NCBI RefSeq assembly: GCF_002571385.2
Contig: NW_019217880.1
Coordinates: forward strand, 230,325 to 294,324
Reading direction: 5' to 3'
DNA length: 64,000 bases
Source: Stylophora pistillata
Taxonomy: Eukaryota
The translations under genes were made by a program, and so were the position numbers. The number at the start of each line of letters is the position of its first letter. Positions within the stretch are counted from its first letter, which is position 1. Shown here in pieces: positions 3,050 through 63,942 of the stretch. The notes below the pieces were generated by a model, which saw nothing but the letters and a program-made list of their open reading frames with translations, ran no database searches and was not told where the DNA came from.

Positions 3050-6000
3050 ATGATGGAGCGTTGGCCGCCAGCTTGGTGGATCATGATCTTTTCGGTTGTC
3101 TGCATCACGACCGAAGCATCACACTTCCGAGGCGGTAGTGTAATGTGGGCTCCTGACAACACTGAGAGCAACAAGGTAAAATGTTTATCAAATTGGATAT
3201 TTCAACTGCTTCTGGCCTTGGGCAGTTAGTGATTCTTTAGTGGGGTACTAAAAAATTTTATTGAAGTAGAATTGTATGTGGTTCTGTATGCACGTGAACT
3301 TTGTAAAACAAGACCTTCAAACCCTTTCCAAGTTTGGCAAGTACTGACCATCTCGAAGGGAACTTTAAGAAACAATCACGATTTTTTGAGAATTTTGTAG
3401 AGCCATACAGAGATGATGTTTATATAAAACAAACCCCCAAAATAGTTTTTTTTTTTTGCAGTACAAAACAACAAAAGAAGTAATGGTAAATTAAACCCAA
3501 AACGCAAGACGTTGGTTAAGATGTCTACACCACACAAACTGCAAATAACAAATTTGAAAATGTGGGTTAAATTTTGTTTCAAGATGTGAAATTAGTAAGA
3601 TAGCCCTTGTAAGTCAGCTAATATGTTCACGAATAAGTAAAGCACACAGTAAAGTCAGTGACCTTTTCCGCATGCAAAACTAAAATCCAATAATTAAGCA
3701 ACGGATGTGCTATTATCTGAAGTAGTCACTAGGAAAAGATAATATACTGCTGAAGGTGAATCTCCTGGCCAAGCCTTCAAGCTCCCAAGTTATCTTAAAT
3801 TTTTCTCTTCCAGCTTCGATGGATTTCCTTTAAGCTCTGAGGCTACAAAATTTTGATGCTTTGTCCAGACAAGGCCCATCAGCTGATACGTTGCTTTATT
3901 CTCATAACTTTTTTGCTGACTAGTGCTTTGAGAGCATCGAGTAAATATACTCGTGAAACACTTCCGGGATGAAAAAGGCCAATAGAATTAGCGCTATATT
4001 AGAATTGCTATTATGGACTTAGTGCCCTTAGCTTTTTATAGAAACTTTTAGAAGCGAGGTAAGTATCAGGTAAGAAGCACCCAGTTTTTTATTTTTTTTT
4101 TAATTGTCTAGATCTTTAAGGATTTCTATCATGTTTTTATCTTGTTTATCTGCGTTTCTCGTGTTTGACATGTGCTTCCCATGTTTGGATAGTTCGCATA
4201 GTTTAAATTCAAAGTTTTTCAGGTACTGAATCTGGACTTATCATATGAACGCAGCCGCGCTGACAAGTATTTCTGCACTTGATTAAATTTTTTTCGAAAT
4301 CTAATCTGTGTTTCATTAGCTACCACCAGAATATAGAACATGCAGAAAGGTGCTACGAGGCTTGCACGAATGTTGGATCTAACACACTATCGGCACTTGA
4401 CAGATGCTTAAAAATATTCGACAGATGCTTGACAGATACCTTGAACGGTACTTGAATGATATTTGAAAGGTACCTGACAGATATTTGACAGGTACCTAAC
4501 AGATGCCTAAAAGATAATTAATTGATACTTGGCAGACACTTAAACGGTCCTTTTAGGAACTGTTACTGTAACTAATTTTACTAGTAATAAGTTTCGTCAT
4601 AGAGATAATTTTTTCTGGAACAGTCTTCCTGAAAATGCTGTCGGTTTAGGGTCTCTGAATGGAATTAAAGGACTCTTTAAGAAGAAAAACTATATTCACT
4701 GGCAATCAGAGGCTTCTCACTCCATGATGATGGAAAATAATTTCTCAATTAACCAATTAATAGTCCATTAGCTAGATAGGTGTAACGCACAGTAGAGACA
4801 GATATAAGCCAAGCTATTCCCTCGGTACGCAACTAGAATCTCTCGACACTGCCAAAAATGCAAGGACCTAGGGGTCACAACAAACTACGATCTATCTTGG
4901 GGTAAACACGTTTCTTACATGGTAAACAAGGCGAACAAAGTGTTAGGTATAATTAGGCGATCACTTAGAAACGATAACCGGTATGCATTTTCTTGCCTCT
5001 TTAAGTCATTAGTAAGACCTATACTCGAATACGCTGCCCCCGTCTCGAGCCCCTACCAAAAAAAGGATATCGAATCCTTGGAAAAAGTCCAAAGAAGGGC
5101 ATCTCGGTTGGCGTTAAAGCAAAAGCGCCGAGAAATGAGCTATGAAGACCGCTGCCAGCCTACTGAATTGGCAAACTTTGGAGAAACGTAGAGAGTTTTT
5201 ATCTCTGATCCAGTGCTATAAGATAGTCAGTTCTGGGAATAGATAGTCTTTCCATTTTCTGACTTTTTCGAACTTGCTAAATGTAATCGAACTAGAGCCA
5301 ACCACGATTATAAGCTCTACGTAAAAGCAGCCATTCTAAACTGCTACAAATTTTCTTTCTTTGTACGGATCGTTAATATGTGGAATAATTTACCTAAAGA
5401 TATTGTACACGCAGGTTCATTGACTTTATTTCGTAACAGATTAAGGATTTACATGAATATTGATTGAGAAGATGGTAAATAGCTTTTAATTATCTGTATA
5501 TAGTGTTTTCATTTCTTTATTTCGGGGAATCTTTTATATAGGGTTGACCTCTAGATATCCCCTTTTGAGAGATATTTTTGTAACTGAGTTTTGATTTTCT
5601 TCTCTTGAATAAAGTAGTGTTATAGGTCGTAATGACTGTCAACATAGCTCAATGGAAACAGAGAGTATGCAAATGAAAGCAAAGCTCAAAAACTAGTGGC
5701 CTTTCATACGTGCTAAACATAACTCACAACAGACATCTAAAATGGAAACAGGTTAAAGTTTACAAATTAAAGATAAAATGTCCCGCGTGTAAGCCCTCAG
5801 CTCCCCAGATGTCCTTTTATTTTAACTACGTAGGTACTATAGAGTGAATTTAGGGTTTTTCTTTTAATTTTTTTGAAACAATGTGTGAATAATGTACTGA
5901 AAGCGTCAGGAGAACTAATAGTAAAACACTTCCGGGATGTTAGGGGCTAATGAAATGAGAGCCACAGTGTAAGAATTACTTTAAAAATTCAGTTCTCCCA

Positions 6001-63100: not shown

Positions 63101-63942
63101 CAAAGGAGACGTCAAAACTAGGAAAATGGCGGCCAAATTGTGCAGTTACAAGGACTTGTATCTTTCGTGTTCTTCCTTCCTAAAATTGAGATATTTAAAA
63201 ATGACGTATTGGGCTTTAAAGCTCTGTGAAAATACGAAGAGTCTCCCGGCTCAAGGAAAATTTGTGGGCCAATATATTCGACCGTTTACAAGCGGTTTAG
63301 TTGAGCAAACTTCTGCAGAATGCATATCGAACTGCGCAGTTGCGAATCTTCACAAGGTTGTTCCCACGACTAAAAAATTGGCGAGTCGAAGCAGATTTTA
63401 AGAGTTTGTATGGGAAATTGGAGTCAGAATGAGTTTGCTCGTATACCTTGGGAAAAGGTAGGCTTGAATTTGAGTATTTCTTTTTCGTAGCGATTGACGC
63501 TTTAACCGATGTAGGCTGCATTTCCAAGTACGCAGCGAAAGAATATCCCATTCTTATACAGCTATTTTGAAGAAACAATCTTTTCCCACACATTTTCTCA
63601 TACTGTTTCAGCGCCATTTTTCTTGTAACACGAGAACCGCCTCCGCCATATTGTCCCAAATTTCTGGCAATGGGGAAAAGAATCAAAATATGAGCGACAT
63701 TCCTGCAGGAGACGGCTTATAGGCAGAGTAGCAGTATCATACAAAAATGTTATTGAACTACCACCTAAAGGACTATGTTCACTGATATTTCAATGCGCAA
63801 ATAAAGGTTCAGCAATTGATGATCAATGACCATTTTTCCAGGCAGTACTCCGCGAGTCATTTTAGCAACTCGTAGACCCTTAACACCCGTGAGCAGATAT
63901 GGATCAGGCTATTCCAGCTGGAGCGTTCAGTTTGACCGATTG
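57133..63942 (+). CDS. Sib-like/Ig/EGF/ZP membrane protein, copy C (exons 1-7; continues beyond window)
   Basis: Exons: 57133-57255, 59448-59719, 59945-60224, 61189-61481, 61859-62011, 62445-62488, 63842-63942. Phases are identical to copy B. Signal peptide MAMRLLAIWIFAFSALGTLTEA|[13 protein letters not shown] and ZP parts are inferred from the paralogs. Confidence 0.9.
57701..57880. repeat. Tandem repeat 3 x 60 bp
   Basis: gaagatttgtcaaattcggg...tgtgtttaaataatca starts at 57701, 57761 and 57821. Confidence 0.95.
59071..59249. mobile_element. Short MITE with TTAA target duplication
   Basis: TTAA|acacgaaggcgcgct ... agcgcgccttcgtgt|TTAA. Confidence 0.7.
60543..61015. mobile_element. MITE with ~130-bp TIRs in intron 3 of copy C
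   Basis: 60543-60675 is the reverse complement of ~60885-61015. Confidence 0.8.

Follow-up and report, generated by a model that had tools for sequence, protein, structure and literature searches.

A tandem array of three old ZP-domain genes with a Sib-like head in the coral Stylophora pistillata

We analysed a 64,000-nt stretch of the genome of the coral Stylophora pistillata (contig NW_019217880.1, positions 230,325 to 294,324; hereafter the window), which has a G+C content of 39% and eight runs of N, and which carries three paralogous genes, here called copies A, B and C, arranged in tandem on the + strand and built on one common 16-exon plan. The array is genuine: its genes are well formed and in part expressed, and as a tandem gene family it is a rather ordinary one. 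The encoded protein is a type I membrane glycoprotein of ~985 amino acids with, in order, a signal peptide, a head resembling the N-terminal part of the Dictyostelium Sib proteins, two EGF domains, a ZP-N/ZP-C module, a furin-type site, a hydrophobic strand, a glycine-rich span, and a tail. We consider it probable, by likeness to known ZP proteins, that the genes encode a shed, filament-forming ZP surface protein with Sib-like binding arms, present in three stable, specialised versions. The copies and their exons are laid out as follows.

3050-19085, + strand: copy A, 15 exons seen, exon 2 not seen
Exons of copy A, + strand: exon 1, 3050-3175; exon 3, 7546-7825; exon 4, 10211-10500; exon 5, 11056-11208; exon 6, 11662-11705; exon 7, 12358-12458; exon 8, 13016-13340; exon 9, 13693-13725; exon 10, 13986-14132; exon 11, 14984-15106; exon 12, 15803-16153; exon 13, 16746-16971; exon 14, 17316-17468; exon 15, 18237-18376; exon 16, 18946-19085 (with the stop codon)
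25490-42337, + strand: copy B, complete, 16 exons, coding sequence of 2958 nt
Exons of copy B, + strand: exon 1, 25490-25612; exon 2, 29703-29965; exon 3, 31075-31354; exon 4, 31729-32021; exon 5, 32675-32827; exon 6, 33194-33237; exon 7, 33774-33874; exon 8, 34701-35025; exon 9, 35358-35390; exon 10, 35667-35816 (GC donor); exon 11, 36418-36540; exon 12, 36732-37082; exon 13, 37709-37934; exon 14, 38365-38517; exon 15, 41889-42013; exon 16, 42123-42337
57133-63942, + strand: copy C, exons 1 to 7 in the window, remainder past the window end
Exons of copy C, + strand: exon 1, 57133-57255; exon 2, 59448-59719; exon 3, 59945-60224; exon 4, 61189-61481; exon 5, 61859-62011; exon 6, 62445-62488; exon 7, 63842-63942

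A BLAST comparison of the window with itself returned three collinear series of short blocks, 73 to 86% identical and separated by unalignable DNA, and the same blocks were recovered at the protein level as at the DNA level. When the blocks were aligned together with their flanks, each was bordered by AG and GT sites common to the copies, the sole GC donor being that of B exon 10. Exon phases were identical, exon lengths were equal modulo 3, and no stop codon was found in the exons or split codons of the modelled copies. Likeness between the copies was confined to exons; the introns could not be aligned and vary freely in length, intron 14, for instance, measuring 768 nt in A and 3371 nt in B. 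All N runs are intronic or intergenic, without overlap with any seen exon. A first-pass annotation, made from the letters of the window, had described introns that had turned over between conserved exons, and this is what we found, the self-BLAST blocks being exons only. The eight peptide strings that it quoted were likewise all recovered on the + strand where it had placed them, the conserved ones three times each. Its statement that the copies share phases and open frames holds for B, for C and for the 15 seen exons of A, but not for the frame from exon 1 to exon 3 of A, where exon 2 was not seen.

Transcription of copy B is shown, and 8 of its 15 introns are spliced out as in the model. Two studies provided polyA libraries (runs X1 and X7) whose RNA-seq contigs matched this copy at 95 to 100% identity. 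Run X1 provided 19 pieces on B, 13 of them at ≥99% identity, with six intron joints exactly as modelled, and run X7 provided eight, seven of them at ≥99%, with three joints exact and one shifted by 2 nt. Loose contig ends also matched the end of exon 1 (one mismatch) and the start of exon 9 (exactly), and the supported introns run from the exon 1/2 joint through the exon 8/9 joint. The public model P0230 (767 amino acids, named 'OIT3') corresponds to copy B, with exon matches reaching 100%, and begins only at exon 4.

Across B exons 2 to 8 (29852-34984), the RNA contigs differed from the reference at 13 exonic places, eight of which are non-synonymous. Six of the 13 are concentrated in exon 3, and at least three changes yield a residue that is present in A and/or C at that place. 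They may reflect polymorphism, brought about by exchange between the copies or derived from other lineages within the species. One X1 contig lacks seven bases at position 34877 in exon 8, which would shift the frame, and the deletion is absent from run X7; an allele, a chimera of paralogs or an error of assembly would explain it.

The modules of the protein are distributed over copy B as follows.

25490-25612, + strand: exon 1, start codon, predicted signal peptide and beginning of the Sib-like head
29703-35025, + strand: exons 2 to 8, head of ~500 amino acids with a Sib-like N domain and an immunoglobulin (Ig)-like, He_PIG-like part
35358-36540, + strand: exons 9 to 11, two calcium-binding EGF domains
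36732-38517, + strand: exons 12 to 14, ZP-N and ZP-C
41917-41928, + strand: exon 15, furin-type basic site RKRR (RKRR in C, RKKR in A)
42143-42220, + strand: exon 16, glycine-rich membrane span, judged by eye, followed by a 38-residue tail

In all three copies a conserved motif comes after a hydrophobic leader at the start of the protein, the signal peptide being judged by eye. The head domain spans exons 1 to 3 and exons were scanned singly, so the head was judged through full-length public relatives. A search with exon 3 alone against 1.84 billion representative proteins found 662 relatives at E ≤ 0.001, usually matched at residues 120 to 220 of the protein. The family PF24907 (SIBA-E_N, the N-terminal domain of the integrin-beta-like SibA-E of Dictyostelium) has a Pfam cut-off of 28.1 bits, which was exceeded by the relatives P0011 (32.2 bits) and P0021 (32.6 bits), as well as by Acropora P0198 (29.8 bits) and Porites P0190 (33.6 bits), the latter two having the same architecture as the window copies. 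PF24907 was matched at E ≤ 0.01 by 15 of 23 further exon-3 relatives, and the bacterial proteins with multiple exon-3 matches consist of He_PIG Ig-like repeats. Because the relatives carry PF24907 and the bacterial matches are He_PIG repeats, the label "Sib-like", which the first-pass annotation had already chosen, appears justified for the head. Sub-threshold matches to LGFP, PapD_N and DUF2631 in exons 1 to 8 were dismissed as chance. A profile of head-only relatives run against the PDB sequences reached 98 chains at E ≤ 1, and the 60 of them listed all hit, from profile position 370 onwards, the EGF-rich tail that some members have, and none hit the head. A search of the ESM Atlas with P0029 gave clusters of rotifer 'integrin beta-like', Bacteroidota and echinoderm ZP proteins with scores of 0.75 to 0.92, which we took as leads only.

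Downstream of the head, exons 10 and 11 gave FXa_inhibition, cEGF and EGF_CA matches above the Pfam cut-offs. The first EGF domain is split, with a 33-nt micro-exon 9 that bears only its first cysteine (B 35358-35816; A 13693-14132), and 25 to 30 poorly conserved residues separate this cysteine from the other five. The phase 1/1 intron at this place would be a natural slot for a CUB/D8C cassette. The ZP module named in the first-pass annotation is present: PF23344 (ZP-N) matched B exon 12 with 57.8 bits (cut-off 24.7; E 1.5e-15), and PF00100 (ZP-C; cut-off 24.6) matched exon 13 with 49.4 bits (E 6.4e-13) and exon 14 with 32.1 bits (E 1.4e-07), with four cysteines in exon 12 and six in exons 13 to 15. 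The basic site is followed by a hydrophobic strand that is conserved in all copies and in both orthologues described below, and, in exon 16 of each copy, by a single glycine-rich span. The tail of copy A has 13 residues and lacks an NxxY-like motif; the tails of B and C bear such a motif without the proline, and no NPxY motif was found in the tail of A, B or C. No VWA domain was matched in any exon or in P0201, P0198, P0217, P0218 or P0230, SRCR and CUB domains were absent from all exons and public models of the window copies, and no D8C domain (PF23283) was matched in the exons or in P0201, P0217, P0218 or P0230.

Selection on the copies is purifying, with a ratio of nonsynonymous to synonymous divergence (dN/dS) of about 0.2. 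Among A, B and C, pairwise dS ranged between 0.57 and 0.74 and dN/dS between 0.17 and 0.25, and amino-acid identity was 73 to 82%. For the head and for the EGF and ZP modules together, dN was 0.158 and 0.140 between A and B, 0.109 and 0.097 between B and C, and 0.150 and 0.142 between A and C, and dN/dS was equal for the two parts. The least constrained part is the membrane span with the tail (exon 16), at a dN/dS of 0.5 to 0.9. The differences are nevertheless locally clumped, the variance over 15-codon windows exceeding that of 2000 permutations (P of 0.0015, 0 and 0.0005). Two variable segments and one near-invariant stretch illustrate this.

29814-29867, + strand: variable segment in B exon 2, with its C partner at 59559-59621 and a 3-codon indel
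31094-31147, + strand: variable segment in B exon 3, with its A partner at 7565-7618
31181-31300, + strand: near-invariant 40-codon stretch with a DPDGD motif, also present at 7652-7771 and 60051-60170

The exon 2 segment is the top window between B and C, where 9 of 15 residues differ and the ratio of nonsynonymous to synonymous differences (pN/pS) is 1.28. The exon 3 segment is the top window for both A-B (11 of 15 residues differ, pN/pS 0.63) and A-C (12 of 15, pN/pS 0.73), and it is largely kept in the Pocillopora orthologues. Further hot windows lie in exons 4, 7, 8, 9-10, 12, 13 and 15, and over 15 codons each the hot windows have a pN/pS of 0.4 to 1.3, none of them demonstrably above 1. 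The near-invariant stretch, which the first-pass annotation had singled out, is real and occurs three times; A and B differ in it by 12 synonymous changes and a single non-synonymous one, A and C by 10 and 0. Selection, rather than recent copying, keeps this stretch near-invariant.

To compare hot windows with the remainder across species, the most variable windows (211 of 873 alignment columns) were set against the rest. Identity was 83.7% in hot windows and 89.4% in the rest between C and its orthologue P0201, and 75.4% and 79.8% between B and its orthologue P0213, as against 56% and 81% between the paralogs (A vs B or C). The hot windows are thus only slightly less kept between orthologues, and the variable segments are therefore old paralog signatures. 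The claim that differences cluster in the N-domain stands insofar as its two named segments are the top windows, but not at the level of modules, with dN alike in the head and in EGF plus ZP and hot windows elsewhere too. As to the "diversified binding tips" that had been proposed, they are not supported: whole-gene dN/dS is 0.17 to 0.25, and the hot windows were not shown to exceed 1 and are largely kept across genera. The first-pass annotation itself had named uniform purifying selection with buried variable sites as the outcome that would speak against its interpretation, and purifying selection is in the main what we observed (low dN/dS, hot windows kept in orthologues). Overall, what it had observed was confirmed for the three-copy array and not for exon 2 of A or for a module-level clustering in the N-domain. 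This pattern suggests specialisation of long standing and not an arms race.

A maximum likelihood tree of 20 public proteins, with all rows kept and with public models standing in for A, B and C, placed the three copies in one pocilloporid clade with a support of 100/100. Within it, C paired with P0201 (100/99), B with P0213 (94/93), and A was sister to both pairs (93/93). P0201 (LOC131780658 of Pocillopora verrucosa, 989 amino acids) is the orthologue of C, on average 82% identical to it, and P0213 (pdam_00007662 of P. damicornis) that of B, both with the same domain order. Because B and C each pair with a Pocillopora orthologue, with which they also have private indels in common, the duplications predate the split between Stylophora and Pocillopora. 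No orthologue of copy A was among the proteins returned by our searches.

Counted over the whole 398-Mb assembly, the exon-3 homologues comprise 11 intact copies, of which seven are on this scaffold, and a single dead copy; ZP-N matches number at least 42. The first-pass count of "at least three" copies was accordingly correct, if low. Four minus-strand paralogs lie upstream (scaffold positions 5572-195729), head-to-head with the + strand genes of the window and 65 to 67% identical to them; the distance from exon 8 to ZP-N is 13 to 15 kb where both were found. Two of the four have no ZP-N match nearby, and two other ZP-N exons, 42% identical, lie among these paralogs. One of the four, P0011, bears a D8C domain. 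Long paralogs with CUB and/or D8C domains (LOC111327217 and LOC111327235 of S. pistillata, LOC114963338 of Acropora millepora) have the same head, EGF pair and ZP module, and are 57 to 67% identical to the window copies in exons 3 and 8; four paralogs of this long kind are on the minus strand of the scaffold. They differ from them by the CUB/D8C cassette, which sits between the head and the EGF pair, and by 9 to 15 kb from exon 8 to ZP-N as against 2 kb in the window copies.

The architecture of the window copies also occurs in Pocillopora, Acropora, Montipora and Porites, and relatives of the family in Oculina, Desmophyllum and Orbicella. Beyond corals, the whole head of a ZP protein of the sea cucumber Apostichopus japonicus (P0232, 874 amino acids) aligns to residues 9-514 of P0201 (32% identity over 523 aligned positions, E 7e-65) and is followed by ZP-N, ZP-C and a membrane span. 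P0232 belongs to another phylum, lacks the EGF pair, and gave no PF24907 match at E ≤ 0.05. Since the sea cucumber has a head plus ZP, the architecture is old and not coral-specific. The description "lineage-specific" is therefore apt for the A/B/C clade within Pocilloporidae, but not for the architecture, found in many stony corals and, as head and ZP, in the sea cucumber.

The public models of the three genes have 719 to 767 amino acids instead of ~985; they skip exons and have lost the head wholly or in part. Copy A corresponds to P0218 (719 amino acids, named 'DMBT1', exon matches up to 100%), which contains a mis-spliced stretch, and copy C to P0217 (752 amino acids, also named 'DMBT1', exon identity 95% on average and up to 100%). 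'DMBT1' and 'OIT3' are misleading best-hit names: the window copies have only the EGF and ZP parts in common with these proteins, whereas SRCR, which defines DMBT1, and CUB were not found. No paper in the literature that we searched names these genes or their architecture; the family is uncharacterised, and its architecture is undescribed though visible in sequence databases.

In animal epithelia, ZP proteins form the apical coats, and those of the uromodulin type (uromodulin, GP2, tectorins) are cut, shed and polymerised into filaments from which their N-terminal parts project. The EGF domains, ZP-N/ZP-C, the basic site, the hydrophobic strand and the membrane anchor follow one another as they do in these proteins, and we consider a uromodulin-like mode of action the likeliest one for the window copies. 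The features in common with uromodulin and GP2 are the EGF domains, the ZP-N/ZP-C module that follows them and has 4+6 cysteines, and, ahead of the anchor, a basic site with a hydrophobic strand after it. In contrast to these two proteins, the arm is a Sib-like head of ~500 amino acids instead of EGF I-III plus D8C, and the anchor is a membrane span instead of glycosylphosphatidylinositol. The precursor would be cut at the furin-type site, the ZP module would then drive polymerisation of the ectodomain, giving filaments of an apical coat or matrix, and the Sib-like heads would stick out of the filament as binding arms. The three copies arose before the Stylophora/Pocillopora split and have since been maintained by purifying selection with paralog-specific surface segments, most likely as three stable specialised versions of the arm that differ in ligand or tissue, and not as a fast-evolving recognition repertoire. 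A study of Pocillopora acuta reports ZP 'uromodulin' paralogs with opposite tissue bias (PMC13581030).

The N-terminal domain family of Dictyostelium SibA-E (PF24907, PF24908) is matched above cut-off by coral relatives of the same architecture, and the window copies share with SibA-E a type I topology and a glycine-rich span, with Ig-like sequence after the N-terminal domain. SibA has an extracellular VWA domain, a glycine-rich span and cytosolic talin-binding NPxY motifs (PMC9197732). Unlike SibA-E, the window copies lack VWA and the NPxY talin motifs and have a ZP module and a furin site, neither of which is described for Sib proteins. With VWA and NPxY absent, these proteins are not members of the Sib family itself.

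Several observations weigh against a shed, filament-forming protein made in three working versions. Cleavage, shedding and polymerisation are predicted from the layout of the sequence, and the RNA evidence covers copy B. Intron-holding RNA contigs also occur, and therefore some pre-mRNA or DNA was present in these RNA libraries. The exon-by-exon Pfam scan of exons 1 to 8 gave no head-domain match for the window copies, and the closest orthologue, P0201, reached 14.2 bits for PF24907, under the cut-off of 28.1. Exon 2 of copy A was not seen, so A could be broken. Two hot windows with a pN/pS of ~1.3 leave room for some positive selection, and the glycine-rich span together with the NxxY-like tail of B and C is also compatible with a protein retained by the cell.

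That last point leads to an adhesion receptor retained in the membrane, whose Sib-like head would bind substrate or particles, whose span and tail would signal or anchor, and whose ZP module would serve as a stalk or for cis-oligomerisation. We regard such a receptor as unlikely. The head is of Sib type, a glycine-rich span is described for SibA (PMC9197732), and B and C have the NxxY-like motif. However, VWA was not found, the tails have no proline-containing NPxY and that of A is 13 residues without the motif, the tail is the least constrained part (dN/dS 0.5 to 0.9), and the conserved furin-type site and hydrophobic strand between ZP-C and the span are the usual mark of shed ZP proteins. 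For the same reason, a furin site ahead of the membrane span and a short tail, the word "receptor" in the first-pass annotation fits less well than a shed filament protein. A fast-evolving recognition family, with tips diversified for microbes or symbionts by positive selection in N-terminal loops, could account for the clumping of differences with its two top windows in head exons 2 and 3, for the indel and pN/pS of 1.28 in one of them, and for the 13 exonic differences, 8 non-synonymous, between RNA contigs and reference. It is very unlikely in our view: dN and dN/dS are alike in the head and in EGF plus ZP, the linker, the EGF insert and both ZP domains contain hot windows as well, identity across genera is 84%/75% in the hot segments and 89%/80% in the rest, and 15-codon windows are too short for a confident dN/dS above 1. 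The interpretative part of the first-pass annotation is, in sum, supported for the array, the ZP module and the Sib-like head, only partly for lineage specificity, and not for diversified tips or a receptor.

Just as improbable, we believe, is a skeleton-facing matrix protein of the calicoblastic cells, tying tissue to skeleton or occluded in it. ZP-domain membrane proteins do belong to the core skeletal matrix set of Acropora and Stylophora (PMC3748352, PMC8382919), but the ZP protein of coral skeletal proteomes is without gene duplications according to PMC8382919, unlike the array described here. Moreover, at least 42 ZP-N matches were counted in the genome, and belonging to the ZP class is therefore a poor guide to a skeletal role. 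An assembly artefact, by uncollapsed haplotypes or mis-joined scaffolds, might be suspected from the eight N runs, yet it is ruled out by the divergence values and its chance is negligible. A dS of 0.6 to 0.7 and an amino-acid identity of 73 to 82%, introns that are unalignable and unequal in length, separate Pocillopora partners for B and C with private indels in common, and public models of three genes on one scaffold all speak for diverged paralogs and not haplotypes, as the first-pass annotation had held. A broader idea can be added to the shed filament protein that we favour. The head of ~500 amino acids could be an ancient adhesion module of amoebae, bacteria-like Ig repeats and animals, which early animals mounted on ZP and of which pocilloporid corals maintain at least three stable versions, so that the filaments of their surface coat display different arms; we consider this quite unlikely.

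Exon 2 of copy A was searched for with protein and DNA queries at lax thresholds, and the sequenced part of intron 1 did not contain it (the best tblastn match had E 0.26); in a search of the species' own genome, none of the 10 exon-2 matches fell in copy A. Intron 1 contains a run of N with room for an exon of 263 to 272 nt, and the missing exon may sit inside it. As the other 15 exons are intact and constrained, we think it present there; as it was not found outside the gap, copy A is counted with its 15 seen exons. Exons 8 to 16 of copy C, with the stop codon, lie at ~1916-7621 of the scaffold piece 293000-302999, i.e., in the next 7.6 kb. The gaps of the window, together with two further features of its sequence, are the following.

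6415-6782: run of 368 N (estimated length), A intron 1
8977-9855: run of N, A intron 3
21856-21881, 50288-50308 and 53727-53861: runs of N, intergenic
51788: single N, intergenic
59178: single N, C intron 1
30624-30746, + strand: dead partial exon 3 in B intron 2, interrupted by one TAA and 66% identical to exon 3 over residues 1-41
42607-42808, + strand: conserved non-coding block 270 nt past the B stop codon, with a partner at 20352-20555 after A

The dead exon is 76% identical at the DNA level to 31057-31186. Downstream of it, a stretch of B is 83% identical to intron 2 and exon 3 of C (30605-31358 vs 59718-60228), and dS between B and C is 0.38 in exon 3 as against 1.16 in exon 2. From this it looks as if exon 3 of B was replaced long ago by a C-type copy. 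Intron 14 of B contains inverted repeats (39291-39442 vs 41660-41809; 40158-40582 vs 41222-41660), and its length of 3.4 kb, compared with 768 bases in A, suggests that it harbours an inserted element.

The non-coding block is 85% identical between A and B, above most exons, and contains AATAAA; it has only two copies in the genome, and it was not found after C. A repeat was rejected on this count of two, and the block is probably the end of the 3′ untranslated region (UTR). A tandem repeat array of ~490 bases (20583-21068) lies directly past the block downstream of A. The 5′ flanks of A and B (2341-3156 vs 24788-25593) align over 837 bases at 69%, probably as a shared promoter or 5′ UTR, and only the last ~80 bases of the C flank are common to them. 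The 15 kb between B and C contain long inverted repeats (43029-44497 vs 50645-54697), and an open reading frame (ORF) at 47233-47967 encodes a Pao retrotransposon peptidase. A 459-amino-acid ORF at 45770-47149 and four other ORFs between the two genes had no Pfam match and are not family members. The intergenic content at 43029-54697 is retroelement debris.

For S. pistillata, the analysis provides corrected full-length models of three genes whose public models are misnamed and miss all or some of the head. The idea of rapidly diversifying recognition tips was not borne out, and the segments on which it was based look like old, conserved paralog signatures. The coats of corals meet sea water, microbes, symbionts and the skeleton. 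Should the broader idea of an ancient head module, quite unlikely as it is, prove true, a small 'arm code' fixed in the genome would be displayed by coral mucus or the apical matrix, and its versions could be suited to different tissues or to the binding of particles, microbes or symbionts.

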